A DNA stretch of 64,000 nt, taken from IMG/VR virus record IMGVR_UViG_3300001782_000005, positions 124,001-188,000 of that record. One strand, given 5' to 3'. Made by a program: the position numbers and the translations under genes. Below, in pieces: positions 98 through 62,670 of this stretch (positions are counted from its first letter, which is position 1; each line of letters starts with the position of its first letter). Below the pieces are notes generated by a model. That model had not been told where the DNA came from, searched no databases, and saw nothing but the letters and a program-made list of their open reading frames with translations.

Positions 98-164
98 AAA
101 TACCTCAATTCACGATAGTAACATTTTTAATTTGTTCTTAAAGAAACAAAAAAAAGAGTAGTTC

Positions 165-190
165 AAAAAATAAGGGGACAGTGCCCCTTA
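165..190 (-). terminator. Intrinsic terminator for minus-strand transcription
   Basis: TAAGGGG/CCCCTTA stem (171-190) with an A-tract on its left, i.e. a U-tract on the minus strand. Confidence 0.6.
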
Positions 191-517
191 CTTCACTTCG
201 AATCTAATTCTGAGCTAAAACGAACTAGCTGCCCACACAATAAACTTTGATGCCTTAATTGTGCAGAAGCCAATGATAATGATGGTCCATGAGATAACAC
301 CACCCATTATCATGAGTTCAGACAGGAATCCCATCCAATCTCCAAACTTTTCAGACTTAGTTGCTTCTTTCACTTCTATCCTCCTTGAGAATTATCTTAG
401 TATATGCCAGCCGCTCGCCCCATGAACACTCCGATAATGAAAGGCCAGAATATTACAAGAGCGATAACTAGGGATATACTAATGGCAAGAACTGTTGAAA
501 GAACAATCTCTTTGAAT

Positions 518-895
518 TTACTCATCTCTTCCATCTCGATCCTCCTTGAGGATTGGAATCTCATCACCATCAGCCAAAATTTCCAATAGACGACCTAATA
601 CCACATGGTCAAGACCTTCAATAGGAGTATGGATTACTTGAACATCATCTGGAAGTTCAGCTGCACGAGTATGAGGAAGAATTGCTTCCAGGACACTTAT
701 GTGAGTTTCCATCGACTCTAATAGGTTATCTCGTATTGGATGCCTTGATCTACTAGACTCGATAAGGTCTTTAGCATTCTTTACTTCCTCAATTTTATAC
801 TCAAGAGTTGCTGTTAGATCCATAAGCACCTCCTGCGAGAGTTTTCTCTCTTTCTCTTTCAAGGTAAGCATTACGACAGTAATTTGAACACTCAA
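518..895 (-). CDS. Hypothetical protein (true start probably downstream, at MDLTAT)
   Basis: ORF in minus-strand operon; GGAGG RBS before the internal Met. Confidence 0.55.
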   Translation of the reverse strand: MSVQITVVMLTLKEKERKLSQEVLMDLTATLEYKIEEVKNAKDLIESSRSRHPIRDNLLESMETHISVLEAILPHTRAAELPDDVQVIHTPIEGLDHVVLGRLLEILADGDEIPILKEDRDGRDE

Positions 896-1088
896 TATCA
901 GTGGGTTGAAGTTCGCCCTCTACGAAATTAAACCTCTGAGGACAAGTAACTTCAACTCCTTCAAAATAGACCTCTATAAACTTAACTCCGCAGTGACTAC
1001 AATTTCCATTTACATACTTTAATGCTTTCCTAACTCTCTCGATATGACCACACACTAAACAAATCACATAATTAACTTTAATTTCCAT
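801..1088 (-). CDS. Small Zn-ribbon protein
   Basis: CLVC...CSHC; AAGGAGG RBS; first gene after the 14-bp motif. Confidence 0.6.
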   Translation of the reverse strand: MEIKVNYVICLVCGHIERVRKALKYVNGNCSHCGVKFIEVYFEGVEVTCPQRFNFVEGELQPTDIECSNYCRNAYLEREREKTLAGGAYGSNSNS

Positions 1089-1135
1089 TGGTATTATCCT
1101 CCTTTAAAAAGTTTACAAACACAGCCCTATCATTG

Positions 1136-1149
1136 ATTAATATATATAG
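1136..1149 (-). promoter_or_regulatory. Conserved putative early promoter CTATATATATTAAT (copy 1)
   Basis: Exact 14-mer seen five times, always intergenic and upstream of minus-strand genes. Confidence 0.75.
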
Positions 1150-1200
1150 TTTTAGATCGTTATAAGTAGACAAAAAAATAAGCGGCAAAATTAAGCCCGC

Positions 1201-1452
1201 TCATCCTCTATATTTTACATCTTTACGCCAAGTATTTAAATCTGATGTACACCCAGCACCAACATAGATCATTCTTGCAAATGCTCTCTTCTCCCTAGCC
1301 TGTTTACACCAATAACGACCAGCCTCTTCATCCCACATAAGTTTATTACAACGCATATCTTCATCAACCCAATTATGAAAAAGAGCAGCAAAACATGGAA
1401 TTTTAAGGCAGCAATAACCACAACCAACACATGGTTGATAATTTTCATTCAT
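1201..1452 (-). CDS. CxxCxxCC (YkgJ-like) Cys-cluster protein
   Basis: PCVGCGYCC...C...C pattern. Confidence 0.6.
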   Translation of the reverse strand: MNENYQPCVGCGYCCLKIPCFAALFHNWVDEDMRCNKLMWDEEAGRYWCKQAREKRAFARMIYVGAGCTSDLNTWRKDVKYRG

Positions 1453-1476
1453 TAATTAATCTCCTGGAAAAAAATA

Positions 1477-1542
1477 AGGCAGCAACCAAGCAGGGGCATG
1501 GCGGTACCCAAAAAGGGTAACACTTCAACTCAGTTGCTGCCT
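1477..1542 (-). other. Intergenic branched stem-loop element A
   Basis: AGGCAGCAAC (1477-1486) / GTTGCTGCCT (1533-1542) enclosing a TACCC/GGGTA hairpin. Confidence 0.55.
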
Positions 1543-1800
1543 AATTTATTATCTGTGACAAATCGAAGTCCTAGTTCTAGGACCTCTTCTTCTTTTTCTT
1601 TTCTTCTTAAGTCTAATACCGGCCTCACTAGCAAGATCTGGATTTTCTCCCACTATTCTGTAGACTTCCGACCTATCCATGCCCAATTCGCTCGCTGCCC
1701 CCAGTGGCCCGAGTTTAGCCACTAATTGACAAACTCTTTGCGCCCTTATAATTCGAAAATCCTTGGGTTCTTGCATGAGCATTCTCCCAGAAAAAATAAA

Positions 1801-1866
1801 GCAACAACCAGGAGAGGGGGAGGGTTTTTGGACTCATTAAAAACCCTTAACTGTCCCGGTTGTTGC
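1801..1866 (-). other. Intergenic branched stem-loop element B
   Basis: GCAACAACC/GGTTGTTGC outer stem and AGGGTTTTT/AAAAACCCT inner stem; flank resembles element A. Confidence 0.6.
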
Positions 1867-2437
1867 CAATTAGTTAATTTCTGAATTTGATCTCCTTTTC
1901 TTTATGGCCATTCTCAATGGTTTGATCTCCCCCCATAGGGCAACCACACAGTAACCTGTAAAAATTCCAAGGTAATCATGAGCAATATCCATCATATCGA
2001 ATTTACCAACTCCAAGATTGAATTGAATCACCTCAGTTACAAATGGAGCTGCAAGAAGAATGGTAATAAAAAACCAATCTTCGAGAGACCAGATTAAAAT
2101 TGAAACAACAGCGAATATAATCGTGTGATATGCATATGCCTGCGGCACACGACCACCTCCTTTCAAATATATCTACAACACCTCCTTATCTACGATACCA
2201 CGGTATATATTTCCCACCATCCACATTATCTATCCTAACAACATGGCGATAAGGAAATATAACCGTTGGCCTTATCCTTGGATTTCGGTTGGCAGGATTA
2301 TCGACGTTAGAAAGTACTAGACCTTGTTCTCCATAATATGCCTTATCCGCAGTAACTCTTCGAATCTCCTTACCATCCCAATAAGTCACAACAACAGCCA
2401 AGGATAATACCGCTAGAAATGCCATTAATTTCTTCAC

Positions 2438-3181
2438 TTAGTCACCTCCTCTCTTAATTATTGTTGAAGATGAAGAAGATGATCCATCTTGAGTTCCTCT
2501 ACCCGGGTCCGTTGTTGTCGTACCAGTACCTCGACCAGAATCTGGAGGTATAGTACTACCAGGCGGAAGGGTTGAACCAGGATCTTTAGGAATTACTGTT
2601 TCTAATATTTTAGGGTCAATAGATGACTCCTCATCTTCACCTGTTGTAACATCAAAAGGGCACTTTATTTCAAAACAATGAAGTTTTCCATCTATCTCGT
2701 AACAACGCCAGCATGTGGGTCCCTCATCGTCATCGTCACCCATGCTTGTCCCTTGATCATTTATCCCAAGACCACTATAGTCATAAGTCTCAGGTTTTTT
2801 CTCCCCTCCCTTCATCATAGCAGTTATGACACCATTAGGACTTGAATAAACAACAAAAGTTCTACTTACTTTCGGAGTGAAACCAAATTTATAACGATAG
2901 ACGTCAGCTTTTTTCACTTCCGAGGGAAGACGAGAACCTCTTATACCATCACCAAAGCGATACTCTGGTGCATTATCCGGATTATAATCTGGAGCAGGCA
3001 TAAGGATAATCATAATTTCATCCTTATCAGCAGGAGAAATATCATGGTCTCTTACGGTCTTTCGACTATTATCCAGAGGTTCAGTCTCTTTACTAATAAG
3101 ATCGCCCTTAGTCATAGCAATAGCTATACCTACACTTAAAGCGAGAAAGACTGCCAAAAGCAGTATTGTTAATTTCTTCAT
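2438..3181 (-). CDS. Secreted/periplasmic hypothetical protein
   Basis: N-terminal signal peptide; Pro/Ser/Thr/Gly-rich tail; GGAGG RBS. Confidence 0.6.
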   Translation of the reverse strand: MKKLTILLLAVFLALSVGIAIAMTKGDLISKETEPLDNSRKTVRDHDISPADKDEIMIILMPAPDYNPDNAPEYRFGDGIRGSRLPSEVKKADVYRYKFGFTPKVSRTFVVYSSPNGVITAMMKGGEKKPETYDYSGLGINDQGTSMGDDDDEGPTCWRCYEIDGKLHCFEIKCPFDVTTGEDEESSIDPKILETVIPKDPGSTLPPGSTIPPDSGRGTGTTTTDPGRGTQDGSSSSSSTIIKRGGD

Positions 3182-3189
3182 AACACCTC

Positions 3190-3435
3190 CTATAAATCGG
3201 GCGGTTTTCCAATGCCTGGAAAATTAAAATTACCGCTTCTAACGGCTCTTTGATCTGCTTCAAGAGCTTCTTTAAATTTTGGATGTTTCCTTTCCTTCTC
3301 GTCACAATCCATACATAAAGTATCTTCGTTAAAATACGACATAGTAGTTATGCCAGTACCTTTTCCACACCGGTCACATTTAGTCATCACCACTCCTCTT
3401 ATCAAGAAACATATTAACTGATAAAGTAGCATCAC
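3190..3435 (-). CDS. Small Zn-finger phage protein (start probably MTKCDRC)
   Basis: CDRC...CMDC. Confidence 0.55.
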   Translation of the reverse strand: MMLLYQLICFLIRGVVMTKCDRCGKGTGITTMSYFNEDTLCMDCDEKERKHPKFKEALEADQRAVRSGNFNFPGIGKPPDL

Positions 3436-4152
3436 GAACAGTTTTAACTAGTTCATCTTCATCTCGACCATAGAAGATAACAATCTCCAACCAGTCAAAA
3501 CCCAGATCCTTACCTTTAATAAAAATAGGCATCCCCTCTTTAAGTCTTTTAACATTCTCCTCAGAGATTCCGAGACCTACTAAAGTACTCTTTTCTCCTA
3601 TTGAAGTAAATTTAATCAATATACTCCTCCTTATCCCAGTTATGACTGTCATACATATAACAACGTTTATCTTGATACCACTTCTTCCAAGGTTCAGTAT
3701 AGATTTTACACTTTAACTTTCCCCTTACCTCTCTCATGTATGGACATCTTCTGGGACCCAATTTAGGACATTTCTCGGCAACGGTATGTAGAGTATAGGT
3801 TGTTTCTTCATGCCTCTTTTCTTCAGGATCAATATCTGGTACGGATTTCCCAAATTTCTTAGTCTTTCTTGCCAAAATTATCCCCCTACCATTTAGCACC
3901 AAATAAAGGACCAAGCGACCAAATAAAAAGAAAAAAGAGGGCAGTTAGAATTAATGCTTCAATCGCTTTTCTTTTTAGTGATTTCATACTGCCCTCTCTC
4001 CTTTTCTATATCTCACAATTAAATCAACAGCTTCATCTGTAGTAAATCCAGCTAATCGTAAGATATCATACTGTGCTTTGGTCAAAACAGTCATACAAGC
4101 AGGTATCCAGTCGAGGGTCTTTCTCTTTTTACTAGTTTTCACTTTACCCTCC

Positions 4153-4761
4153 TTACTGAATCTCCTTGACTTTATCAACTCCAGTAGGTTTATCTTTCTT
4201 CGGTTTATCTTTTTCAGGAGTTTGGGTATCCCCCAGATTAGGAGCTTGAACTCCAACCGAATCGGCATCACCTACTCCAGCACCAGGTTCTTGTACTGGT
4301 CCAACTCCACCTTTTTCAAGAATATCCTTAACCTGTGGAGGATATTGAGGACCAGGAGTATCCGGTTTATTTGTATCAACTTGAGCAAGAAGCAAAGAAC
4401 TTTCTTGCCAAATCAACTGAATATGCCTATCTTCGGAAACAGACATAAGTAAACGATTTGTACTTACATCTCGGACAATAACTTCCCTTGGATAATATGC
4501 CCAAGATAGATCTTGAGCAAAATTTAACCTTTGCTGATTATTAAGGTTATGATATTGCTCACCAACAAAAACATCCACTCTTTCATCCCTAAGAAGAGTA
4601 TCTCTAATAAGGTAACGATAGGGTTCAAGTCTTTCCTCAATTGTCATAGTATCTGGACTCTTATGAGCACAACCGGGTAAAAAGAAAACCACAAAGGCCA
4701 AAACCAAAACAATTGAAAGAAGCAATAACTCAAAAAATGATGTTTCATTTTTATATGACAT
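4153..4761 (-). CDS. Putative lipoprotein
   Basis: Hydrophobic N-terminus ending in lipobox-like LPGC. Confidence 0.55.
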   Translation of the reverse strand: MSYKNETSFFELLLLSIVLVLAFVVFFLPGCAHKSPDTMTIEERLEPYRYLIRDTLLRDERVDVFVGEQYHNLNNQQRLNFAQDLSWAYYPREVIVRDVSTNRLLMSVSEDRHIQLIWQESSLLLAQVDTNKPDTPGPQYPPQVKDILEKGGVGPVQEPGAGVGDADSVGVQAPNLGDTQTPEKDKPKKDKPTGVDKVKEIQ

Positions 4762-5054
4762 TCTTCCCTCCTTCTCTATAATCTAAGGAGGGCCTCATAT
4801 CTACAAAATCTTCGACCATCCTTAGTTATCACATCTACTAATGCAATTTTTACACCAAGAGGAACAATTTTCTTTGTAAGAAATTTTGCTCTTTCCTTCC
4901 ATTCTTTAGACCAACTTTCCACTTGTGTAGCAATTATATCAATCTGCTTACTAATGGGGTCGTTAGCATCAGCTTCAGCAATAAAAACAGTATTTAGATC
5001 CGAAAATTGATTAACCAATAGAGCGGGAATTTCCCTATGAAAAGAACCCATAAT

Positions 5055-5549
5055 CTATCTTTCTTCCTCCTTAAATCTCGCACCAAAACCTAAACCCATG
5101 TCCTCAATTTTTACACTCACATAATCAGGTTTGACACTTGTAAAATAGGTCACTAACCTCTCCTCTCCTGGTGCAATAGAACACGGATAGACTCCAGTTT
5201 GAGTTACTTGGCCTCCCTCGGTAATCTTAGAGTGAATAAATCCAGTAAAAACTTTTTCATCCCGATTGAGAACAGAAAAATAAACCTTATACCAATTTTC
5301 CCGAATCTCTTTCACAATGGCCGTACCCATAGTTAAGTTCATCGGCCTCACAGATTCAGTAACAGGTTTAGAAATTTTAACAATTGGAACCACTTTTGGT
5401 TCAGGTTTAACCTTCATCCACTTGATAAGATTATTCGCCACAGATATGGCTAAAAGGACAGCTAGTATATAGAGAAGAATCTCAATACTAGATAAATCCT
5501 TATCCAAGTCGTCAGAATAATATTTTCTATATCTTGGTCTTGCCCCCAT
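5055..5549 (-). CDS. Single-pass membrane protein
   Basis: Start reassigned to ATG 5549 (GAGGAG RBS); one TM helix. Confidence 0.55.
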   Translation of the reverse strand: MGARPRYRKYYSDDLDKDLSSIEILLYILAVLLAISVANNLIKWMKVKPEPKVVPIVKISKPVTESVRPMNLTMGTAIVKEIRENWYKVYFSVLNRDEKVFTGFIHSKITEGGQVTQTGVYPCSIAPGEERLVTYFTSVKPDYVSVKIEDMGLGFGARFKEEER

Positions 5550-5571
5550 TTTTAACTCCTCTAAAAAAGAA

Positions 5572-5641
5572 CCCGCCGACAGGAAAAAGTAAGTGGGGGG
5601 CGCACATCCCCACTTACACAAGGAGAGATCCCGCCGGCGGG
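5572..5641 (-). other. Intergenic branched stem-loop element C
   Basis: CCCGCCG/CGGCGGG outer stem extended by G-U pairs on the minus strand; inner 10-bp GTAAGTGGGG/CCCCACTTAC. Confidence 0.6.
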
Positions 5642-5647
5642 AATTGG

Positions 5648-6295
5648 TTATTCTAACGGATCCCCATCAAGTTCATCCATGGGGATAGGAGCATAACGCC
5701 AGTCTGTATTCTGAGAAATGGTCACAATGGGAGCTTTCAGGAGATAAACTTCATTGTTGATCCGAAATCTCAAATTACCACCAGCTTTAAATGCTTCTAT
5801 ATCGTCCTCCGACACCTCCCCAGTAAAGAAATAAAGCGGTCTTCCTCCTGGAGAAAATAATCTAATATCAACCTGCTTACTGAGAACTATTGGCATCTCA
5901 TCTGGAGGCATTATCTGCTCAGAAGAAACACCATAATCTTCCTCTTCAGCTGCTAATATCGCAAAACGATATGGAATAGGTTTCACAATGATAATCGGAG
6001 CATCAATTAACCCCTTCATTGCGGACGCACCGCCATACCTGAGGTCATCTCCATATACAAAAGCTAGCTCATCTTCTCCTGTGATCCATGCTTTTGTATT
6101 CGGTCGGTAAAATATACGACCATGCTCAGTTATAGCCCAGACCTCATAGAAACGGATACGAGGATAATAAATTGTATCAACTGCTTCCGCCTCATCTCCA
6201 CCATCATTGGCAGATGCACCTCCAGTGCAGCCATAAGTGAAGCATAAAGCTACCACCAACAACAGTAAAGCGATAATCTTAGGTATTTGTTTCAT
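5648..6295 (-). CDS. Putative lipoprotein
   Basis: Start at ATG 6295 with AAGGAG RBS; signal peptide ending YGC. Confidence 0.6.
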   Translation of the reverse strand: MKQIPKIIALLLLVVALCFTYGCTGGASANDGGDEAEAVDTIYYPRIRFYEVWAITEHGRIFYRPNTKAWITGEDELAFVYGDDLRYGGASAMKGLIDAPIIIVKPIPYRFAILAAEEEDYGVSSEQIMPPDEMPIVLSKQVDIRLFSPGGRPLYFFTGEVSEDDIEAFKAGGNLRFRINNEVYLLKAPIVTISQNTDWRYAPIPMDELDGDPLE

Positions 6296-6560
6296 AATGC
6301 TACTCCTTACTTTAGTATAGTTTGGTAATTTAGCTCGTCGGAGAGCCTCCGGGGATGAAGATGAATCTATCATCCCAAGCTACCTGCATTTTTAATGGGC
6401 CAAGTCATCCGATACCATTTTCCCACAAGTGCGCTCGCCTCAGAACGAGGTAGATAGAATATCTATATGAGATATCTTGCAATTAGCACAATACTTCTTC
6501 TCAACATCAACCGGGTGGTAACTTGTCTTATTACAAATTAGACACTTGATAGCTAAAGTA

Positions 6561-6755: not shown

Positions 6756-6766
6756 TGACTCCCTCT

Positions 6767-8203: not shown

Positions 8204-8208
8204 ATTTG

Positions 8209-9268: not shown

Positions 9269-10711
9269 TTAAAAATCAGAATTCATCAGTTGTTGCATTT
9301 CATTAAATTCATCACCTAATTTATTGGCAAAATATAGAGTATAGAATCTTATCATATCCTCTTCAATCTTTGAAAGAGGAATACCAACAAGTTTCTGACC
9401 ATCAAAAATATTACAAAAACTAACTCTTGATATTCTACCAACAAAATAACTCAAGACTTTATGTGGGTATAACTTTGTTCGAAAACCAAGAAAGTTATCT
9501 GTATCATTCTGTATATTTATATAATTGTGAATCCCTTTCAATTTATATGTTGTGGTAATCGAAGGTTGTTCAAGCGGATAATAATCAAGTAGGGAAAACA
9601 AATTCCCATACTGACTCTTAAATGTCCTCTTTAACAAACCATGTAAATATACAGAAAGAACAGCAGCATGATCAGGTGAAATAGTCTTGAAATGAATATA
9701 GGGTATATTTGTTAACCTTGATAAAACAGGAAAGACAAGACATTCACATAAAGGAGATACGTGTTTTATCTGACCGGCCCTAGTTTGAAATTCTACTATC
9801 GAAGTGTCAGAATTTTTCTTATCATCGAAAGTAGACACAGTTAGTCTCTCTATCATGTCATATATCTGCTTAAATGCAACGCCTTTTAATCTTCCCAACG
9901 TATCATTATAAGAATATGTCTTGAGATTATTAACGCTCTGTGAGTGAATATCCTCAGTTGCAACAGAATCATCATATATAATTGACCCTTTATAAACTGA
10001 TCTCAAAAACCACTTCACAGACTCATCAACAACCCCGACAAAATAAGTAATTGGATTTCTACCATCACAGAGAACAAGAATTGAGTTCATAATAAAATTA
10101 AATATCTCAATCACATGGACATCAATTCCCTTTCCCTGTATCATCTTTATATAATCCCACATATACCGATCTGTAAGATTATATCGAAAAGTTTTTGTTT
10201 TAATCACGTTGAAAATTTTGAAAACTATCTCAGTTTCCAAAATATCATCCGCTAACTGATTATAAATCTTCTTATGCAAACGATCACTCAATCTCATGTT
10301 CTCACTATTCGAAATTAATGCATATAATTTCAAATAGCTAGATAATTGAACTATTCTTTCAATTTCATCTGCGGTAAATAAAATAGAGGTTTTCTTTGCC
10401 TTGGATTCATCAACGAATTGATTAAAATCCATATTCTCCAACTGCATGGTCATATCAACATATTTCTTAATCATTGGAATATTTTCGGATAAACTAACAA
10501 ATCTCTTCTCAGGGTCATCCACATATTTGGAAAGAAAATCATAGAACCAATCATCAAATTCTTGACCACAGAGTTCTGAAACTCTCTTAATAAAACTCGT
10601 AACTATATCAAATTTATTTGTTATAGAAGATGCTGTTAACTCGAGAAAGAACTCACGGTCTCCCACAGTCACAACCCAACTTTTTGAATCCTCTTGTCTG
10701 AAGTCTATCAA
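9269..10711 (-). CDS. Putative promoter-specificity (sigma-like) subunit of phage non-virion RNA polymerase, AR9 gp226 / phiKZ gp68 type
   Basis: 480 aa, helical; segments DFNQ...SSYLKLYALI, KIFNVIKTK...TDRYMWDYIK and NPITYFVGVV...KWFL are collinear with AR9 gp226 as I recall it; alignment not computed. Confidence 0.6.
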   Translation of the reverse strand: MIDFRQEDSKSWVVTVGDREFFLELTASSITNKFDIVTSFIKRVSELCGQEFDDWFYDFLSKYVDDPEKRFVSLSENIPMIKKYVDMTMQLENMDFNQFVDESKAKKTSILFTADEIERIVQLSSYLKLYALISNSENMRLSDRLHKKIYNQLADDILETEIVFKIFNVIKTKTFRYNLTDRYMWDYIKMIQGKGIDVHVIEIFNFIMNSILVLCDGRNPITYFVGVVDESVKWFLRSVYKGSIIYDDSVATEDIHSQSVNNLKTYSYNDTLGRLKGVAFKQIYDMIERLTVSTFDDKKNSDTSIVEFQTRAGQIKHVSPLCECLVFPVLSRLTNIPYIHFKTISPDHAAVLSVYLHGLLKRTFKSQYGNLFSLLDYYPLEQPSITTTYKLKGIHNYINIQNDTDNFLGFRTKLYPHKVLSYFVGRISRVSFCNIFDGQKLVGIPLSKIEEDMIRFYTLYFANKLGDEFNEMQQLMNSDF

Positions 10712-11726: not shown

Positions 11727-11740
11727 ATTAATATATATAG
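11727..11740 (-). promoter_or_regulatory. Putative early promoter CTATATATATTAAT (copy 2)
   Basis: Exact motif upstream of the operon containing the gp226-like gene. Confidence 0.75.
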
Positions 11741-21088: not shown

Positions 21089-21182
21089 CTTATATCAGCT
21101 CCTCCAATTGGCCAAACTCGTGTGAACTGGTGGCATCCAATTTTAATTTTGTTCTAAATCTAAACAAGTATTAGTTGTCTAA

Positions 21183-22439: not shown

Positions 22440-22812
22440 TCATCCCTCCTGACCTTTTAATTTTTGTTACTTCCTGCAGTGATTCTATCTTGCTCTTTCT
22501 GAGCTCTTTCAACTCTTTCTGCTAATGCTCCAATATCAAGAAGATCTGCAAGATCTCCAGCACCGCCTCCAGACAATTTTCTTCTTAAATCCATTTCATC
22601 TTTAAGACTCCTAGATATTTCCTTTCTTATATCAAGTAAACTATTAAAAAATGCTGTCGCCGTCTTAATTTTCTCCTCAAAAAGATATCTAAATCTTTTA
22701 TCAATTTTCTCCGGAAAAATACTACCCACCTCGGCCTGGATGGATTCAAGATTAGTTAGAAGTTCTTTGAGCGCCTCACGATTCTGCTTATACTCCTCCA
22801 GGAGCTGAATAA

Positions 22813-32027: not shown

Positions 32028-32521
32028 CGCGACTCCATTAGCAATGATATCCTTCAACAGCATGAAGAAGCTGAAGTTGTTTCTGTGTTTCAATAAATTT
32101 GCCTATAGCTTCTTCACCTATAGCTTCTATGAAAGCATCTAAGGCTCTCCCGCCTGTTACTAATTTAACGTTTCCATCTTCTCCAAGTTTATGAAAATAT
32201 GGTTCAGCAATTTCTATATTTAACTTCTTTATTTGTTTAAAAATGAGTATATCAGCGGCTGCTCTAGTTGGGGCTGTAGCAGCATTAAACGAAATATATA
32301 ATCTTTCCTCATTTTCTTTATAAACTAAAATAAAATAATCACAAACAAATGTATGTATACCCGCTTTAGCTGGATCCCCCTGGTAAGTAAAGTCTGTTCC
32401 ATACTCATCTAATTTTTTAATTATTTTTTTAATCATGCTGTTCATATTAATTTCTCCAGCACTATTTATTTTTTATTTGTTCCATATCAAAAAAATTTAT
32501 ACTCATATGGTATGAAACCAA

Positions 32522-33786: not shown

Positions 33787-34158
33787 TTAGAATATGCAGA
33801 GGTATGTAATTACAAAACCATAAATGAGAAGGCTAATAAAAGGAGAGAGAACCTTTAGATCATCAATAGCTGATTTAGTTTTTGTTCTCTTCTGAGTATA
33901 ATTACTATACTTAATACACCCTTCTGTACATATAGCTCCAATAATACATTCTCTACATGGATTTTTACAAAGAGAATCAAGCAACCACGAAGAGCTTCTC
34001 CTTCGCTCTAGTAACTCCTGTGTATAACCACCTTCGGTAATAGTCATCGTCCCAATATCGACTCCTTTCCTCAAATAAAACAACTTTTTTCCACTCACTC
34101 CCCTGTGCTCTATGGACAGAAATAGCATAACCAAAATCAAAAAGGTCAATACTATCAA
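33787..34158 (-). CDS. Cx2Cx5Cx3C protein with C-terminal TM (true start likely near 34049)
   Basis: NPCRECIIGAICTEGC. Confidence 0.5.
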   Translation of the reverse strand: MIVLTFLILVMLFLSIEHRGVSGKKLFYLRKGVDIGTMTITEGGYTQELLERRRSSSWLLDSLCKNPCRECIIGAICTEGCIKYSNYTQKRTKTKSAIDDLKVLSPFISLLIYGFVITYLCIF

Positions 34159-35654: not shown

Positions 35655-36728
35655 GACTACTCCAATCTTTTTATTTATTTTTTGTTCCCCCCCAGGATTA
35701 AAGTATCCCGGGAGGGGACAAATGTTATAGAAAAATTTCAGACCACCCCATCTCCTCTTTCTTCAAAACTGCTCTAGCATTTCTAATAGCTTCGGGTAAT
35801 ATAAGTATAGGTTTAACACAGGCCCAACAACGATGTATTCCCGACACGGGCGGTTGATTATGGGTTTTGTTACCACAGTCTCCACACTCAAAACTCATAA
35901 ACTCCTGACCACCTTTCATAGTTAAGGTTATCTCTCTCATGACCGAATTCTTGTTGTAACGAATTTTCGTGTGACAAGTCATTTTTTGTGCCTCCTCATT
36001 ATTTTTAGAACTTTCTCTGTAAGGATCATCCAACCGTCATCATATCTATGTTTAATATTATGATCCTCAAACCCGCGCGGTCTTACAATTTTATAAGTAT
36101 AAATTTTCCTCCTCTTGCTTCTACTTTCTTGTCTCCTCACTTGAATTTGACCTATTCTCTCAAAATCCACATATGCACATATTATTAACAAGTTATCCGT
36201 CCTCCCTCAAAACTTTAAAATCAAAAGGACCCAAATTCCCACTATAAACCTGATCAATAAAATTCTGCTCCTGAGTCATGAGAAGATTTATTGCCTTCTT
36301 GTCATTCGTATATCCTATATGATTAGGATCAATATATTCAAGAGTCATTATCCGCTCACTATCAGTTACAGGAAAGAACCTAAGACCTTTCTCTTCTGAA
36401 GCATCAATTATGCTCGGTATCCCATCAGTAAGTCTAAGTCCACACTCTTTAGCAATCCATTCAACATAAACTTTATCCTCAATAGGAATAGACATAACTC
36501 CCCATATCATCTCTTCCCACTTGACCATGACAAGTTGAAATAAATCATTCTTAGGAGTATCTGGAGGATAATGTCTATATTCCAAAATAGACCCAAATAG
36601 ACCTACACCAATCCTAATAGGTATCAACATACCAATTATAAAAAATCTACTCTCATCTTTAGTCATCTCCCTGAGTTCATCATCGTTCATTGGACGACTT
36701 ATCTCTGGTATTGGCATATATCCTCCCT

Positions 36729-38505: not shown

Positions 38506-38519
38506 ATTAATATATATAG
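38506..38519 (-). promoter_or_regulatory. Putative early promoter CTATATATATTAAT (copy 3)
   Basis: Exact motif at the major strand switch. Confidence 0.75.
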
Positions 38520-38624
38520 TGGATTGAAGGTTTAAAAATAAGAAAATTTCTACTGAATGAGATACTTTTTTAGAATATAGTAACAAATGAATGATAGAAT
38601 CAGTTTGGAGGGAGTAGTGCAAAT

Positions 38625-39666: not shown

Positions 39667-39848
39667 AGAGGCCATAAAAATTTGAATAAAATTAAAGATT
39701 TACAGAACCACATTTTCCCTGATTTATGATAATGATTTATGACACTCCGGTGTGGTTCATTGGTTTCACCACACCAAAGTGCTTTTGGGCATACGCCTTA
39801 TACGTTAAAGAACAAATCAAAAAGAAAAACAAAAAAGGAGATCAACGA

Positions 39849-41840
39849 ATGTACAATGGAGAAGAAACAGTATGGGTTAATCAAAAGGAATTTCAGTACA
39901 AAGATGTAGAATATGGTTCAGCTTCAACAATGGATATTTCAACTTCAATTAATACGAAAGATTTCAAATATTTTTCACAGGTGACTCTAAACATCTCAAT
40001 TACTTCAGATTCGGATAGAAGTAGGAGAAATTGTAATTTAAATATTAATGATGTTAGGAGTTTGTTCAACTCTTTCTTAGAGGTTTCAAGAGATTATAAG
40101 GCCGCTTATGAAAAAGAAGAACCATTCAAAATCTCAAATAAATATGGTAATAAATACCTTGAGATTATGTATAAACTTTCAAGAACTCAAGTAAGATGTG
40201 TCGTGTTAACTATTATCCACAGTGAGAATGATTATGGTCAAATAGTAATTCCTTTAGAAGAATTTGAGACAATAGTTCATATATTCTCATTGTTTCGTCA
40301 TAGTTATCACATATTTAGAAAAGAACTCAAAGATCAAATCATTAATCATAAGATAGTTGAAAATACTTCAGCAATGGAAAGAGCTATTAGGACTTTACCT
40401 TCCTCAATTTCCACATCTCAGGTAGAATTTCCAAGTTTTAATATTGAAACACCAATCGAGTCTACTGAAGAGCAGAATGATTTTGAGAAATATGTTAAAG
40501 ATGAAGAGGTTCTAGAAAAACCTCTTCCGGAAGAAAAGAGGATAGAACAACAACAAGAGGTAGAGGCACCTCCAGAAATAAATAGTGAATTTATTCGTGA
40601 TGTTTTAAAGTTGGATATGGGAAATTATGAGAGATTACTTGCAGCAGCATCTGGAGAGTATAATACAACTGAGGCGATATTAGAAAGGTTAAAAGAAACT
40701 ATAACACAATCTGAAGATTATGAATTTTTGCCGGGAATATCTGAGAGTGATTATAAATCTGCTCTATATATTTCAAGGTTTAATTATTTAACTGGATTCA
40801 AATTATATTCCAGAGATAAAATTCAAATTCCAACTTCTATCGCTCCGATTAAATATAGACCCGATAAATCCAAAGTTCAAGATTTAAACGTTGAAGTAGC
40901 TTATGATCTATTGACAATAAGTGCTTTTGTAAAATGTTTAGTTCAGAAACTAGGTCAAAAGATTGCAGATAGTCAGAGTAATAAATCACTATTCTATTAT
41001 GCACATAGGTGCTTTACTGATATTTTATGCTTTAGTTTTCTGACTGATGTGGAAGGAAGTATTGTAAAGAATTGTGTAATGACAAGATTTCGAGATTATG
41101 AGAAGATAGGATTTTTCAAGCAATATCAAGATCTTCTTCTTGTAAATAATTGTACTTCTGTCGTTGAGCAGGATATACAGTCATTTCTGGATCTTTTAGT
41201 TGAGAAGGTTTTACCTGCTGAGCTCTATATTAATAATTTACATAATAAACTCCATGAAGATAAATTATTGCTACCTGCTACAAATAAGGTTAGTTTAGAA
41301 CAAATTACAAATGAGGTAGTTAAGATTAACGTTCTTCATTTTGTTAAGGAATTGAATGTTTATGAGATTGATTTAGCACAACTAAATCAGACTATTAATA
41401 TGCAAATTCCTCCTGAGTTATTTGATTTATTACGTGCTCCGAAAAGTTTGAGAAAACCGGTGGAGAAGACAAAATATAACTCTAATCTCCATTGGTATTT
41501 TAATAAATATCAAGGTGACCTTCCAAAGGGTCATGAAGATAAATTAATTAGTTATTTTGAACAACTTGGAGATAATGATTTTCCATTTGATAATCCTCCT
41601 ATAAATTTGGAAGATTTAGAGGAGAGATATATACGAGCAATATATCATCATAATAGTTTGGAGAAGGATCAGAGGAACTTAAAACGAAATGACTTTATCA
41701 CGTATGTTCATGAAGAATGTACTATGTCGAAAAGGAATATTCTTGATATATATAAGGCCAAAGAAGAAGAAGAAGAAAAAGAATTGAAAAAAGATATAGT
41801 TGAAGATTTTGGTGCTATGTTGGAGGCCATGGAAGAATAG
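39849..41840 (+). CDS. Large hypothetical protein; N-terminus possibly a Whirly/PC4-like ssDNA-binding fold; acidic tail
   Basis: Start reassigned to ATG 39849 (AAAGGAG RBS); two strands-then-helix units; EEEEE...MEE end. Confidence 0.45.
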   Translation: MYNGEETVWVNQKEFQYKDVEYGSASTMDISTSINTKDFKYFSQVTLNISITSDSDRSRRNCNLNINDVRSLFNSFLEVSRDYKAAYEKEEPFKISNKYGNKYLEIMYKLSRTQVRCVVLTIIHSENDYGQIVIPLEEFETIVHIFSLFRHSYHIFRKELKDQIINHKIVENTSAMERAIRTLPSSISTSQVEFPSFNIETPIESTEEQNDFEKYVKDEEVLEKPLPEEKRIEQQQEVEAPPEINSEFIRDVLKLDMGNYERLLAAASGEYNTTEAILERLKETITQSEDYEFLPGISESDYKSALYISRFNYLTGFKLYSRDKIQIPTSIAPIKYRPDKSKVQDLNVEVAYDLLTISAFVKCLVQKLGQKIADSQSNKSLFYYAHRCFTDILCFSFLTDVEGSIVKNCVMTRFRDYEKIGFFKQYQDLLLVNNCTSVVEQDIQSFLDLLVEKVLPAELYINNLHNKLHEDKLLLPATNKVSLEQITNEVVKINVLHFVKELNVYEIDLAQLNQTINMQIPPELFDLLRAPKSLRKPVEKTKYNSNLHWYFNKYQGDLPKGHEDKLISYFEQLGDNDFPFDNPPINLEDLEERYIRAIYHHNSLEKDQRNLKRNDFITYVHEECTMSKRNILDIYKAKEEEEEKELKKDIVEDFGAMLEAMEE

Positions 41841-44700: not shown

Positions 44701-45804
44701 ATGAGTGATGAAGAAAAGAAAGAGGAGATAGTTGAGCAGCCTGAGATAGTACCTCACCCGCCTCCACCTCGACCAGAGAAAAAAGATAATAGATTATTTA
44801 TTGGTCTTGATTGTGGGACAATGAATATCTGCTGTGCCAGAAATGATGTAGACCAGATTAGAATTACAAGAAATGTCTTTCTGCCAATTAGCGACGATTC
44901 TGTTTCAATGTCTGAGTTATCAAATATTAGCTATGTGAAATCAGATGATGGAGAATTGTTTATTATAGGAGAAGATGCGTTTAAATTTGCAAATATATTT
45001 GGTCAAGCAGTTTCTCGACCAATGGAGAAGGGTTTAATCTCTCCAAAAGAGATATCTGCAATTGATGTTCTCACATTAATAGTCAAAGATCTAATAGGTC
45101 CAGTGCAGAATAGAGATGTTTATTGTGCTTATAGTATCCCTGCTGAAGCGATTGACGAAACTAGATCTGTTATCTATCATACAAGAGTATTTGGTCGAAT
45201 TTTGGGTGCCCTTGGCGTCAATCATCGCCCAGTTAACGAAGGTGCAGCAATTATATACTCAGAGTGTAGTAAGGAGAGGTTTTCTGGAGTTGGAATATCT
45301 TTTGGTGCAGGTATGTGTAATGTTGCAATAATGTATAAGGGAGTGGAAGTTTTAAAGTTCTCTACTTCTAGAAGTGGGGATTATATTGATAATTCCGTTT
45401 CCGAATCTCTAAATATAGTTCCAAACAGAGTGACTTCAATAAAAGAAAGACGTCTTGATCTAACTAAAGGTTTTATGCAAGAGAAGGACAAAAAAATAAG
45501 GCGAGTTATTGAGGCACTTGAGTATTATTATTCTGCTCTTATAAACTATACAATAAAAAAGATAATTAATGAATTTAATGAGAAGGTTGACATTGAAGTT
45601 GACGAGAATTTGCCAGTTATTATATCTGGAGGAACGTCAATGCCGAATGGTTTTCTTGAGTTGTTTAAGTCTATGATATCTCAATATGAGTTGCCATTTG
45701 GTGTTAGTGAAGTAAGGAGGGCTAAGAATCCACTTACTTCTGTTGCAAACGGTTTACTTGTTTTAACTGTTGCTGATTTCTCAGGAACAAAAATAAAAAG
45801 ATAG
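44701..45804 (+). CDS. Actin-fold ATPase (MreB/ParM/MamK superfamily)
   Basis: Phosphate-1 IGLDCGT, connect-1 NEGAA, phosphate-2 SFGAG, adenosine ISGGTS, connect-2 NPLTSVANG. Confidence 0.85.
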   Translation: MSDEEKKEEIVEQPEIVPHPPPPRPEKKDNRLFIGLDCGTMNICCARNDVDQIRITRNVFLPISDDSVSMSELSNISYVKSDDGELFIIGEDAFKFANIFGQAVSRPMEKGLISPKEISAIDVLTLIVKDLIGPVQNRDVYCAYSIPAEAIDETRSVIYHTRVFGRILGALGVNHRPVNEGAAIIYSECSKERFSGVGISFGAGMCNVAIMYKGVEVLKFSTSRSGDYIDNSVSESLNIVPNRVTSIKERRLDLTKGFMQEKDKKIRRVIEALEYYYSALINYTIKKIINEFNEKVDIEVDENLPVIISGGTSMPNGFLELFKSMISQYELPFGVSEVRRAKNPLTSVANGLLVLTVADFSGTKIKR

Positions 45805-50747: not shown

Positions 50748-50749
50748 AT

Positions 50750-53300: not shown

Positions 53301-53314
53301 ATTAATATATATAG
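53301..53314 (-). promoter_or_regulatory. Putative early promoter CTATATATATTAAT (copy 4)
   Basis: Exact motif heading the 50.8-53.2 kb minus-strand island. Confidence 0.75.
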
Positions 53315-53336: not shown

Positions 53337-53343
53337 GAACAAA
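53337..53343 (+). promoter_or_regulatory. Putative middle/late promoter element GAACAAA
   Basis: About 28 nt before the first GT gene; similar position before six other genes. Confidence 0.45.
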
Positions 53344-56678: not shown

Positions 56679-56687
56679 GGAGATAAG

Positions 56688-57965: not shown

Positions 57966-57969
57966 AAGT

Positions 57970-60127: not shown

Positions 60128-60139
60128 CGAGGATGGTAA

Positions 60140-61171
60140 ATGAGTAAAAACTTTTGGTTGTTCAGAACAAATTTGAGGCCATTAGAGTATTACCATCAAT
60201 ATAAGAGTTTAGAGAATTTTGAAAAGAATTGCCACGATTTTTATTTATTAATGGGCGTTTGGTTTCTGAGAAATAGAATATATGATAATTTTATAATATG
60301 GAGGTTGAATCCGAAGAGACAGAAATTGGAAGATATAGTTTTCGATATAGATGGTAAGAAATTTATTCAGAGATGGGTAAATAGTTTTAACGAAGTATTC
60401 AAATATGACCCACCAAAAATCTCCTTTTTTCGAGGAGGATTCCCCGAGTACTGTCAGATTACAAATTCCAACCCGGGTTATCTAGGTAAGAAATTATATC
60501 TTGGAGCTGGTAGGAGAGTCTATCCTCAACATGGAGGAAAGTATGACTTAGTACTCCTAGAAGACGAAGAAGATCAAAGAACTGACTATAAAACAGCTCC
60601 GTTTTATAAAACTGCTAATAGTGAAATATTTAAACCCCTTGATATGCCAAAAAAATATAACCTATGTTGGATTTGTAATTTTGTACAGATAAGACATAAG
60701 GGTCAAGAATTCTTTATAAATGAGGTTTCGAAATCATCTCATCTTAAGCAATTAGCTATTGTTCATGTAGGAAATAAATCCGAAGATGGCCGAAAGATGT
60801 GTAGGAAATATGGAGTTAATAATATTGAATTTGCTGGTTGGGTTGAAAGACCAATTCTAAATGAGTATTTGAATTCTAGCTATTTCGGTATAGTAACATC
60901 AAATGAAGTTGATGGATGTCCAAGAGTTATAACTGAAGTAATGATGTCCGGCACTCCTCTATTACTAAGAAAACGAACCCGTCTTTTAAGTTTCTATAAG
61001 AAATCTGGAATTATAATATTTGATGATAAAAGTTTAAAAGTTAAATTACAACATGGTATGTATAAATACGATGAGTATAAGAATCAAGCGAAAAAAAATA
61101 TTGAGGAGAGAATATCTATGAGTAAAGTTTGTAATATGAACTTAAATATATGGAGTAATTCAAAAAAATGA
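60140..61171 (+). CDS. GT4-like glycosyltransferase
   Basis: HKG, F.GW, DGCPRVITE..MSGTP. Confidence 0.75.
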   Translation: MSKNFWLFRTNLRPLEYYHQYKSLENFEKNCHDFYLLMGVWFLRNRIYDNFIIWRLNPKRQKLEDIVFDIDGKKFIQRWVNSFNEVFKYDPPKISFFRGGFPEYCQITNSNPGYLGKKLYLGAGRRVYPQHGGKYDLVLLEDEEDQRTDYKTAPFYKTANSEIFKPLDMPKKYNLCWICNFVQIRHKGQEFFINEVSKSSHLKQLAIVHVGNKSEDGRKMCRKYGVNNIEFAGWVERPILNEYLNSSYFGIVTSNEVDGCPRVITEVMMSGTPLLLRKRTRLLSFYKKSGIIIFDDKSLKVKLQHGMYKYDEYKNQAKKNIEERISMSKVCNMNLNIWSNSKK

Positions 61172-61196
61172 GGTACATATAAATCATGTACCTCAT
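61162..61196. terminator. Hairpin terminator between convergent genes
   Basis: ATGAGGTACAT (61168-78) / ATGTACCTCAT (61186-96), A-tract on the left. Confidence 0.65.
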
Positions 61197-61222
61197 CCGG
61201 AGAATGGCGGGGGAGTTAAGTC

Positions 61223-62308
61223 TTATTCGACTCTATCGAGAGCCCATTTCCAGCCAGCCTTAATTCTGTCTTTGACATAATTATAGGATCTGACAATTCG
61301 ACCTGGGTTCTCTTTCTCCTTCTCCTTTTGTTTCATTTGATACTGTTGAATCTGTTCAAGGGGAATTTCTTTCATTTTTGCTTTCAGTACACTACCCTTA
61401 AGTTGCCCCTTGAAATTATCAGAATGGAAGGTAATCTTCTTTTGCCCTGTCCTCCAAAGGATAGATGCACGTCGGACCTCAACTTGTTCAATTTTTAGAG
61501 GGCCTTGTACATAATTCTTTATTGGATGAGGCATTGCTCGATGGTCTGGATTGCCCATAAAAGCAAAGCAATTCTTAAGACCTTTTTCACGCATTGCATT
61601 GACCATTACTTCCATGTCAGTTTCGGTTCCGCCTTTGAAATCTCTATAGACGAATGGGCCGCTCATGGAAGTATAGCCATCGCCGATTAGAATACTGTCA
61701 TACCCCCATTCTTTTGCTCGTTTTGACATAGCCTCTGCTAACTCTTTATTGATACCTTCTATGTTAGCGGGTCGGATTGTGACAAATCCATCTTTGTCTT
61801 CAATTACTTCGATGCCGTCAAAGTTGGGGTTTTTGAGTGTTTGGATTCTTCCTACTAGGGCATCCTTGATTTCTTCCAGAACAGATGCTTGCCTTGAGTA
61901 ATCTTCGACAGCTTGCTTGATGACTTGTGGTCCAGTCTCATATAGAACCACTCCAGCTATCCCGCCGAATACTATAGCAAGTACTAGGATCACACCTGCT
62001 AGAACTTTGGCTGTATATACTAACGGATTTGTCTTCAACTCCTCTGGTTCTAGTTCTTTGGCTTTCTTACCAAACATCTTTCCCAAGGTTTCAAAGAAAC
62101 CTGTTCTTTTGGTGAAGGCCACTTTTTCTTCAATCTCGGCAAGTTTGGAACTAATTTCAACTAGCTCCTCTTTAGCCTTAAGCAACCTTGCTTTGTCACC
62201 ATCGGTGGCTACTCCTTGGGTGATCCGATCCTCAATTGCTGCACATTCTCGCATCAATGATGCTCGGTTTTGACGAAGTTGCTTTTCTTTTTCGTCCATA
62301 AGTAACAT
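61223..62308 (-). CDS. Coiled-coil single-pass membrane protein
   Basis: N-terminal coiled coil, TM, soluble domain; AAGGAGG RBS. Confidence 0.55.
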   Translation of the reverse strand: MLLMDEKEKQLRQNRASLMRECAAIEDRITQGVATDGDKARLLKAKEELVEISSKLAEIEEKVAFTKRTGFFETLGKMFGKKAKELEPEELKTNPLVYTAKVLAGVILVLAIVFGGIAGVVLYETGPQVIKQAVEDYSRQASVLEEIKDALVGRIQTLKNPNFDGIEVIEDKDGFVTIRPANIEGINKELAEAMSKRAKEWGYDSILIGDGYTSMSGPFVYRDFKGGTETDMEVMVNAMREKGLKNCFAFMGNPDHRAMPHPIKNYVQGPLKIEQVEVRRASILWRTGQKKITFHSDNFKGQLKGSVLKAKMKEIPLEQIQQYQMKQKEKEKENPGRIVRSYNYVKDRIKAGWKWALDRVE

Positions 62309-62332
62309 CCTCCTTTTTTCTTCGTTCGGTAA

Positions 62333-62521
62333 TTATACTATTTCTTCCCTTTCAATTTCCGAACTTCCATAACCTTTAATGATTTTGAAACCATATGCGG
62401 GAAATGCTACTAATCCCACAAGACCTCCTGCCGCCATTCCAAAGAAGAAGCCTATTACTGCTAAGGCTATCAAAATTAGAACGAACCCGACCACCGTCAT
62501 TACGTCGATCGCCAATTGCAT
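62333..62521 (-). CDS. Small membrane protein
   Basis: Gly-rich hydrophobic hairpin; AAGGAGG RBS. Confidence 0.55.
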   Translation of the reverse strand: MQLAIDVMTVVGFVLILIALAVIGFFFGMAAGGLVGLVAFPAYGFKIIKGYGSSEIEREEIV

Positions 62522-62576
62522 CTGCTAGCCTCCTTCCACAAGTAAATTTTCGACGCACAATAATTATATTCCAGTA

Positions 62577-62590
62577 ATTAATATATATAG
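62577..62590 (-). promoter_or_regulatory. Putative early promoter CTATATATATTAAT (copy 5)
   Basis: Exact motif heading the 61.2-62.5 kb island. Confidence 0.75.
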
Positions 62591-62670
62591 ACACAGATGA
62601 TTAACCAAGAATCATGTGAGATAAAATTTTTGGATATGAGAACATATATTAAAAATGAAGGGAGAAACGA

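Follow-up and report, generated by a model that had tools for sequence, protein, structure and literature searches.

A GAACAAA motif in an uncultivated 277-kb marine jumbo phage is a real, strand-specific and evolutionarily conserved promoter-like signal that resembles the late promoter of Bacillus phage AR9, and the same phage encodes a 480-aa protein whose predicted structure has the fold of AR9's promoter-recognition subunit, gp226. We analysed a 64,000-nucleotide stretch of the genome (positions 124,001 to 188,000 of IMG/VR record IMGVR_UViG_3300001782_000005; hereafter the window) together with the full genome and related contigs. Our favored interpretation, held with moderate confidence and inferred from homology, synteny and regulatory logic rather than from start-site or binding data, is an AR9-like two-polymerase cascade in a new lineage with unsplit polymerase genes, in which GAACAAA forms the core of the middle/late promoter class (P2) and is read with the gp226-like factor.

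The GAACAAA motif and its conservation

We first examined whether the motif is enriched beyond background. The original prediction had named eight sites in the window, and all eight exist on the strands it gave, 24-59 nt before a start codon preceded by a Shine-Dalgarno sequence. In the window, GAACAAA occurs 28 times against 15.7±3.9 in shuffles, with 0 of 100 shuffles reaching 28, and genome-wide there are 87 copies against 39 for the reversed control. Intergenic DNA makes up 9% of the genome yet holds 35 of the 87 copies, of which 26 lie within 80 nt upstream of a same-strand start, against 4 for the reverse complement. In the 100 nt before all 370 called starts, the sense strand carries 34 copies against 6.1±2.5 in 300 dinucleotide shuffles (maximum 16), and for the window's 108 genes the count is 9 against 1.8±1.3 (maximum 7); the reverse complement, at 5 against 2.5, is not enriched. 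Unguided analyses returned the same signal: GAACAA is the top 6-mer upstream of genes after the complement of the ribosome-binding site, and expectation-maximization (EM) recovered the extended motif T-N-R-GAACAAA-W-W-A-W-A-R-A, 16-65 nt before starts. The resulting position weight matrix gives 40 hits of at least 14 bits, against 2-4 in Markov-shuffled genomes. The sites in the window, including four that the original prediction missed, are as follows.

131..137 (-): P2 site (GAACAAA; 24.1 bits), 33 nt before the DNA-ligase-like gene (genome 123069-124097), following a hairpin plus T-run; its operon runs on to the set-B polymerase genes.
21148..21154 (-): P2 site (22.1 bits), 59 nt before the 106-aa gene 20768-21088, heading a long minus-strand operon that includes a Cas4-like exonuclease and baseplate-hub-like genes.
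22463..22469 (-): candidate weaker P2 (TAACAAA), missed originally, 23 nt before the UvsX-like recombinase gene 21183-22439 and inside the end of the upstream ORF.
32476..32482 (-): P2 site (26.6 bits), 30 nt before gene 32038-32445, following a terminator-like hairpin and heading the clamp-loader and primase operon.
33881..33887 (-): P2 site (19.6 bits), missed originally, intergenic, 110 nt before gene 33336-33770.
35681..35687 (-): P2 site (16.9 bits), 26 nt before gene 35502-35654 and directly after a G+C hairpin; its operon holds the Dda-like helicase.
38581..38587 (+): P2 variant (TAACAAA; 14.8 bits), 37 nt before gene 38625-39569, the first of the plus-strand arm; back-to-back with the P1 site at 38507-38519.
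39810..39816 (+): P2 site (20.0 bits), 32 nt before the 663-aa gene 39849-41840, following a hairpin.
41298..41304 (+): P2-like site (15.6 bits), missed originally, inside ORF 39849-41840; an internal promoter or a chance match.
45785..45791 (+): P2 site, missed originally, 25 nt before gene 45817-46377 and overlapping the end of the upstream ORF.
53337..53343 (+): P2 site (20.2 bits), 27 nt before the glycosyltransferase gene 53371-54366, an operon head; back-to-back with the P1 site at 53302-53314.
62640..62646 (+): P2 variant (GAACATA; 22.0 bits), 24 nt before the QueC-like gene 62671-63270, an operon head; back-to-back with the P1 site at 62578-62590.

The motif is also maintained across diverged relatives. 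In 31 of 32 terminase loci, including orthologues at 57-60% identity, GAACAAA is kept 14-40 nt before the start although the flanks have diverged, and it is the top upstream 7-mer in relatives (72 against 4.4 expected). Counts of GAACAAANNNNARA in four related contigs are 36, 37, 25 and 16, against 5, 11, 9 and 1 for the reversed control. AACA is invariant within the recovered motif, both in this genome (35 sites) and in relatives (64 sites).

Consistent with a promoter class, 6 of 28 P2 sites follow a strong hairpin, against 7.5% of random places, and 12 of 27 first genes after a strand switch carry P2. Calling these promoters late is too narrow: P2 precedes the terminase, the tail-sheath operon and a virion structural protein, but also replication operons and both polymerase operons, such that middle/late fits better.

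We next asked whether the geometry of the motif matches that of AR9 promoters, given that the original prediction had noted a mismatch to the AR9 N6-TA spacing. The A/T tract described there proved more specific, with positions +11 to +13, counted from the G, being A, A/G and A. Position +12 is never a pyrimidine in this genome (86% A, 14% G) and lies 8 nt after AACA, as does AR9's +1, although the seventh base after AACA is A (69-91%) rather than AR9's T at -1, and a T is favored one base earlier in relatives (58%). In 77 of 79 sites the Shine-Dalgarno sequence begins at +12 or later, with a pile-up at +12/+13. The spacing discrepancy may thus be resolved in part, and the conserved purine could represent +1, which would place GAACAAA at about -12 to -6.

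A predicted gp226-like factor and an early-type motif

The 480-aa protein yielded no phmmer, PHROG, Pfam or tblastn hits, and profile comparison with gp226 showed no sequence similarity (hhalign probability 1.9%), although gp226 and gp68, its phiKZ counterpart, themselves share only 8.6% identity. In contrast, the five best Foldseek PDB matches of its AF2 model are all gp68 or gp226 chains, the fifth subunits of the phiKZ and AR9 non-virion RNA polymerases, the top three with E 3e-5 to 4e-4. The model is only moderate (pLDDT 69, pTM 0.46), and its sigma2-like middle part (residues 174-269) is poorly modelled. Structural comparison with VIA gave Z 14.9 to 7s01_A, which is AR9 g226, over the whole length (396 residues aligned), and Z 9.1 (rmsd 4.0 over 166 residues, the C-terminal domain) to 7ogp_B, whereas the next unrelated match has Z 4.7. 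The 16 best BFVD matches, at probability 1.00, are proteins of 464-581 aa, and the named ones come from phiKZ-like phages.

We also identified a second, 16-nt AT-rich motif, CTATATATATTAATTA (P1), which shares ten bases with AR9's early consensus and heads small-gene operons, one of which holds the 480-aa gene. Of the 27 first genes after a strand switch, 10 beyond those with P2 carry P1 in the gene's orientation, and in about ten intergenic regions the two motifs stand back-to-back and point outward. The factor gene and the P1 motifs in the window are as follows.

9269..10711 (-): gene for the 480-aa protein with the predicted gp226/gp68 fold, the candidate promoter-specificity subunit.
11728..11740 (-): P1 (early-type) motif CTATATATATTAA, 68 nt before the operon 121 aa, 197 aa, 480 aa.
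1137..1149 (-): P1 motif, 48 nt before the small gene 801-1088.
38507..38519 (-): P1 motif, 48 nt before gene 38153-38458, pointing away from the P2 site at 38581.
53302..53314 (-): P1 motif, 79 nt before gene 52905-53222, pointing away from the P2 site at 53337.
62578..62590 (-): P1 motif, 56 nt before gene 62333-62521, pointing away from the P2 site at 62640.

The phage carries two complete sets of RNA-polymerase beta and beta′ genes (sets A and B). In 9 of 12 related loci the factor gene stands directly before the set-B beta′ gene, and a P1-type motif lies 50-80 nt upstream, before the operon here and directly before the factor gene in relatives; the AR9 record likewise annotates an early promoter before g226. 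No sigma-70 region 2 was detected in the genome, and sigma-70-type promoter matches are not enriched (49 against 53.9±8.9 in shuffles over 12 kb).

A proposed transcription cascade and its alternatives

The computational tests agree with the proposal, made in the original prediction, that these are cognate promoters for the 480-aa protein, although this link is itself inferred from homology, synteny and regulatory logic. In the cascade that we propose, a polymerase brought in with the virion reads P1, and one P1 operon makes the gp226-like factor, with the same operon in most relatives also carrying the set-B polymerase genes. A phage polymerase carrying this factor would then start transcription at P2, and the resulting short-leader mRNAs would cover replication, nucleotide-metabolism, glycosyltransferase/QueC, virion and polymerase genes. 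Two further points count against this model. Both polymerase operons are themselves headed by P2 in this genome, leaving unexplained how the P2-reading enzyme is first made here. Moreover, synteny and regulatory logic pair the factor with set B, yet the N-terminus of set-B beta′ resembles AR9's virion subunit g145 (100 bits) more than the non-virion g270 (49 bits), set A shows the opposite pattern, and the phylogenetic tree did not resolve the assignment.

A less likely but still possible alternative is that P2 is a genuine promoter read by something other than the 480-aa protein: the other phage polymerase on its own, a polymerase with another unrecognized factor, or the host polymerase redirected by a phage protein. 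The 480-aa protein might instead serve the P1 class, or be needed only for assembly, as phiKZ gp68 partly is, being required for core assembly (PMC9209446). No direct link between protein and motif was obtained; the complex prediction gave no answer, and if the factor pairs with set B, whose beta′ N-terminus is nearer to AR9's virion subunit, that pair could be the virion enzyme that reads P1. However, in both studied systems the gp226/gp68 protein belongs to the enzyme that reads middle/late promoters, and the AACA core and the position of the conserved purine match AR9's gp226-dependent promoters, albeit without the T at -1. The lack of a detectable sigma-70 region 2 and of sigma-70-like promoter enrichment, together with a factor gene under an early-type promoter, as expected for an enzyme acting after early transcription, also weigh against this alternative.

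It is unlikely that GAACAAA is instead an element of the transcribed leader, such as an RNA-processing site, a translation enhancer or an operator next to the ribosome-binding site. The motif does lie close to the Shine-Dalgarno sequence (16-40 nt before the start in most cases), is followed by an A-rich tract, and often sits between genes of one operon. Yet ten plus-strand operon heads, which need a promoter, have P2 as the only conserved signal pointing their way, and several sites directly follow terminator-like hairpins. The distance to the Shine-Dalgarno sequence varies from 12 to 34 nt with only a sharp lower bound, which suits a start site better than a fixed translational element, and no Rfam family matches in the window.

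Equally doubtful is a mechanism identical to that of AR9, in which the genome would carry deoxyuridine in place of thymidine and the factor would read 3′-UUGU-5′ in the template strand through uracil-only pockets; the question of non-canonical bases, raised in the original prediction, finds no support. The AACA core and gp226-like predicted fold are present, no dUTPase-family or dCTP-deaminase-family gene was found, and a dCMP-deaminase-like frame is present. However, the genome has a ThyA-family gene that matches an archaeal-type thymidylate synthase model along its whole length at 88 bits, and the replicative family-B polymerase carries a family-4 UDG-like domain with SENPG and HPSF motifs and a cysteine cluster, although Ugi was not among the genes searched for. 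The residue equivalent to gp226 V206 could not be placed. As a weaker argument, the genome was assembled to full length from several ordinary metagenome runs, whereas dU phage DNA is reported to resist standard library amplification.

Finally, although an A-rich 7-mer is common in DNA of 37% G+C and about half of the 87 copies lie inside genes and probably do nothing, a chance or compositional origin is refuted by the dinucleotide-preserving shuffles, which never reach the observed upstream count, by the lack of reverse-complement enrichment, and by conservation in front of orthologues with diverged flanks.

Relation to known promoter systems

Among the closest known systems is the AR9 non-virion RNA polymerase with gp226. 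Both share an invariant AACA core, a purine 8 nt after AACA, a factor with the gp226 fold (predicted here) of similar length (480 against 464 aa) whose gene follows an AT-rich early-type promoter, a long AT-rich early motif sharing ATATATATTA with AR9's early consensus, and a two-polymerase genome. The conserved core here is longer, with G before AACA and AA after it and A rather than T at the predicted -1, making the motif detectable from sequence alone. The polymerase genes are unsplit and much closer to bacterial beta′ (E 5e-98 and 2e-65), the factor has no detectable sequence similarity to gp226, and the ThyA-family gene and UDG-like domain make dU DNA unlikely.

With the phiKZ non-virion RNA polymerase and gp68 (PMC7598289, PMC7618050), the phage shares the fold match to gp68 chains 8que_B and 7ogp_B, probably thymine-type DNA, and an early AT-rich promoter class. 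In contrast, phiKZ late promoters (T-3 ATG+1) have only TATG at the start site and no AACA element, and the phiKZ polymerase genes are split.

If +1 is the conserved purine, GAACAAA occupies the place of the bacterial sigma-70 -10 element (T-12 ATAAT-7), with A at -11, and gp226 is described as a distant sigma relative; however, no -35 partner is seen. The T4 late promoter, probably TATAAATA used with gp55/gp33, would likewise be a short A/T-rich element close to the start, with short leaders, in front of late genes, but the invariant part here is GAACAAA rather than TATAAATA, and no sigma-70 region 2 match, the kind that might detect a gp55-like protein, was found.

Sequence signature and conservation of the GAACAAA motif

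The 277,131-bp IMG/VR virus record has direct terminal repeats and 36.7% G+C, and Megablast against known phages returned no match at the DNA level. Near-identical DNA was found only in marine-sediment and seawater metagenome runs, none of them RNA. Our gene calls gave 370 genes covering 91% of the genome, mostly with GGAGG-type ribosome-binding sites. The original prediction proposed GAACAAA as a second promoter class, and all eight of its sites are present on the strand it gave, 24-59 nt before a start codon. The window contains 28 copies of GAACAAA against 15.7±3.9 in shuffles, and the genome 87 against 39 for the reversed control. Intergenic DNA makes up 9% of the genome but holds 35 copies, of which 26 lie within 80 nt upstream of a same-strand start, against 4 for the reverse complement. 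Positional enrichment, which the original prediction had asked to be tested, is clear: in the 100 nt before all starts there are 34 copies against 6.1±2.5 in dinucleotide-preserving shuffles (maximum 16 in 300), and for the window alone 9 against 1.8±1.3, whereas the reverse complement is not enriched.

The same motif was recovered without guidance. Among 6-mers in intergenic upstream regions, GAACAA ranks first after the complement of the ribosome-binding site, and EM from that seed yields a T-rich stretch followed by a-GAACAAA-t-N-aaAAA, placed 16-65 nt before the start in most of the 35 regions selected. The resulting matrix finds 40 genome sites of at least 14 bits, against 2-4 in Markov-shuffled genomes, and 28 of these are intergenic and within 120 nt of a same-strand start. 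One high-scoring site (genome 189208-189214) instead lies inside a called 273-aa ORF and is followed 20 nt later by a strong ribosome-binding site and an ATG, suggesting an internal promoter and start or a mis-called gene. Three further sites, at genome 15185, 18295 and 23027, share nearly identical contexts (gttgGAACAAA) and precede giant genes of 992, 1564 and 1404 aa; the last two genes begin with almost the same codons, so they are paralogous giant genes, presumably virion genes, each with its own putative promoter. Another, at window 21148, begins an operon that contains a Cas4/RecB-like exonuclease gene (window 19280-20200, minus strand; PHROG 1706, E 2.5e-25).

We next asked whether the motif, hereafter P2, behaves as a promoter. 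Of 27 first genes after a strand switch, 12 have P2 within 100 nt, and ten of the others have a second, AT-rich motif (P1, below) pointing their way; in about ten divergent intergenic regions the two stand back-to-back, each facing its own gene. Six of 28 P2 sites follow a strong hairpin, some with a T-run, against 7.5% of random places. A sigma-70-type promoter is not supported, as sigma-70-like matches are not enriched over 12 kb and the genome has no detectable sigma-70 region 2, and a T4-type late promoter is likewise not supported. Reading the reverse complement (TTTGTTC) as a Bacteroidota-type -7 element fails, because the orientation is wrong, the spacing does not fit, and the genome uses strong GGAGG ribosome-binding sites. 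No Rfam family or tRNA lies in the window, and no literature on GAACAAA as a phage promoter was found.

The motif is conserved across diverged relatives. In 31 of 32 loci carrying terminase orthologues at 57-60% identity, fetched from IMG/VR, GAACAAA lies 14-40 nt before the start, while the surrounding DNA has diverged beyond recognition. In 48 related loci, which are not all independent, it is the most enriched 7-mer in the 70 nt before called genes (72 against 4.4 expected), ranking ahead of the ribosome-binding site. In four related contigs of 149-269 kb, GAACAAANNNNARA occurs 36, 37, 25 and 16 times, against 5, 11, 9 and 1 for the reversed control, and its strand follows blocks of the contigs.

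Aligned on the G as position 0, sites in this genome show R at -1, GAACAAA at 0-6 and W at 7-8; position 12 is 86% A and 14% G with no pyrimidine, and position 13 is 91% A. The AR9 late consensus is A(-11)ACA-N6-T-A/G(+1), so that the purine-only position 12, the eighth base after AACA, occupies the same place as the AR9 +1. The T at -1 in AR9 is not kept; it is A here, with a T favoured one base earlier in relatives. Among 79 sites here and in relatives, the first base of the Shine-Dalgarno sequence lies at +12 or later in 77, with a pile-up at +12 and +13; in the other two the motif sits between the ribosome-binding site and the start codon, and these are surely not promoters. This sharp lower bound is what a start at about +12 predicts, although without RNA data the start site is inferred. 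Such a start implies very short leaders and would place GAACAAA at -12 to -6, the position of a -10 element.

A 480-aa protein with a predicted gp226/gp68 fold

The original prediction inferred that these promoters are cognate to a 480-aa protein encoded in the window. This protein has no match in PDB sequences, PHROGs, Pfam or known phages, and PHROGs and Pfam also left many P2-driven genes unnamed. Relatives at 42-87% identity exist in IMG/VR; we aligned 16 of them and folded the alignment, obtaining a mean pLDDT of 69.3. The five best Foldseek matches in the PDB are all chains of the fifth subunit of the phiKZ or AR9 non-virion polymerase (8que_B, 7s01_A, 7um0_A, 9rjs_B and 7ogp_B). An independent all-against-representatives alignment gave Z 14.9 to 7s01_A, which we confirmed to be AR9 g226, over residues 1-460, and Z 9.1 (rmsd 4.0 over 166 residues) to 7ogp_B, before dropping to Z 4.7. 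In a viral model library, the 16 best matches are uncharacterised proteins of 464-581 aa, and the named ones come from phiKZ-like phages. Profile comparison of the 480-aa family with gp226 revealed no sequence similarity (hhalign probability 1.9%), in keeping with the 8.6% identity between gp226 and gp68 themselves, and a protein-atlas search gave nothing usable. The densest block of invariant residues in the family (about 173-255) falls where gp226 has its sigma2-like domain (184-264), but it is also the worst-modelled part, so the residue equivalent to V206, which makes AR9 uracil-specific, could not be placed.

An early-type motif and a proposed transcription cascade

The second motif, P1, is a 16-nt AT-rich element, CTATATATATTAATTA, that occurs in about 19 intergenic places with at most two mismatches, in most of them 38-79 nt before a same-strand start, typically that of a small gene. 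Read in the opposite orientation, as TTAATATATATAG, it would lie in tandem upstream of P2, implying early and late promoters on the same gene; we rejected this reading because three copies were then antisense to all neighbouring genes and ten operon heads had no signal. The 13-mer CTATATATATTAA occurs five times in the window against 0.04 expected, and P1 shares ATATATATTA with the AR9 early consensus AAATATATATTAT and is probably the early promoter class. The window copies and the polymerase loci discussed below are as follows.

Window 1137-1149, minus strand: P1 motif
Window 11728-11740, minus strand: P1 motif heading the operon that contains the 480-aa gene
Window 38507-38519, minus strand: P1 motif
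Window 53302-53314, minus strand: P1 motif
Window 62578-62590, minus strand: P1 motif
Genome 81080-84076: set-A beta gene
Genome 84302-87007: set-A beta' gene
Genome 113878-117972: set-B beta gene (1364 aa)
Genome 118309-121314: set-B beta' gene

In distant relatives an exact or variant P1 copy lies 50-80 nt before the factor gene (that for the 480-aa protein) itself, and AR9 g226 likewise has an annotated early promoter. In 9 of 12 related loci the order is baseplate genes, factor gene, one or two small genes, set-B beta', and in four relatives a P2 site lies between the factor gene and set-B beta'. By contrast, this genome and its two closest relatives have about 12 kb of mostly small, unnamed minus-strand genes (here window 215-9259, genome 124215-133259) separating the factor gene from the set-B polymerase genes, which are adjacent in nine more distant relatives.

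In the simplest scheme, the injected enzyme would read P1; P1 operons would make the factor, and in most relatives set B too; that enzyme would read P2; and P2 would drive everything else, including the other polymerase. However, several results do not fit. Both polymerase operons in this genome are headed only by P2, at genome 88227 and 124137, and no P1 copy with up to three mismatches precedes them, although a 165-nt gap before the genes that lead into set-B beta' (genome 122215-122379, minus strand) holds an AT-rich stretch resembling the variant P1 motifs of distant relatives and may be the missing early promoter for set B. Comparison with AR9 also cuts across the scheme and conflicts with synteny: the set-B beta' N-terminus matches the virion subunit g145 better (100 bits) than the non-virion g270 (49 bits), set A shows the reverse (68 against 19 bits), and the C-terminal parts are ambiguous. 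A beta' C-terminal tree left the very long AR9 branches (length above 4) unplaced, an annotation hint from Staphylococcus jumbo phages ('non-viral' beta') contradicted the AR9 annotation and was not relied on, and complex prediction of set-B beta' residues 1-480 with the 480-aa protein gave no answer, counting neither for nor against binding. The assignment of the factor to either core therefore remains unresolved.

DNA bases and relation to known jumbo-phage systems

The original prediction also raised the question of non-canonical DNA bases, which gene content can partly answer. The genome has a divergent ThyA-family gene (201192-202055) that matches the archaeal-type thymidylate synthase model along its whole length at 88 bits, below that model's cut-off. 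The family-B DNA polymerase (genome 195443-198700) is fused at its N-terminus to a family-4 UDG/UdgX-like domain with SENPG and HPSF motifs and a cysteine cluster. A dCMP-deaminase-like frame (genome 192450-192905, plus strand) carries one in-frame TGA, which could reflect an assembly error, a broken gene or recoding; no other genetic code was assumed. No ThyX, dUTPase-family gene, dCTP-deaminase-family gene or TGT/DpdA match was found. Together, these features lean against replacement of thymine by uracil. They do not exclude another modification, since the ThyA-family enzyme could be a hydroxymethylase, and QueE-like, GroES-like and ThyA-family genes form a P2-driven cluster (genome 199698-202055), with a QueC-like gene elsewhere (window 62671-63270).

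Collectively, the original observation is confirmed, and its interpretation is supported as far as sequence and structure prediction can go, although the link between the 480-aa protein and the motif is inferred. Reviews of jumbo-phage transcription state that middle and late promoters cannot be predicted by bioinformatics (PMC7598289), and a MEME search in AR9-like Staphylococcus phages also failed to find them; in this genome, the late-type motif is long and conserved enough to map transcription units in a whole uncultivated clade. The clade offers a handle on how the fragmented, sigma-less phage polymerases arose, and on whether AACA recognition requires uracil or can work on thymine DNA, as the engineered gp226 V206G mutant does. 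A tentative and broader possibility is that the gp226/gp68-type sigma-like factor and its AACA-centred element are ancient and widespread, and not a peculiarity of uracil-DNA Bacillus phages. This marine-sediment lineage would pair them with unsplit, bacterial-like beta and beta' subunits and with ordinary, or at least non-uracil, DNA, and would then be a living intermediate between bacterial polymerases with sigma and the fragmented polymerases of phiKZ and AR9, and the first jumbo-phage group whose middle/late promoters can be read straight from the sequence.

Both complete beta and beta' sets, which relatives also carry, are unsplit and much nearer to bacterial subunits than AR9 or phiKZ subunits are: both beta' proteins are closest to bacterial beta' in the PDB (E 5e-98 for set A and 2e-65 for set B). 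The system resembles the two-polymerase programmes of AR9 and phiKZ, with a factor of predicted gp226 fold and an AACA-centred putative promoter, but occurs in a lineage with unsplit, bacterial-like polymerase genes and probably no uracil DNA.
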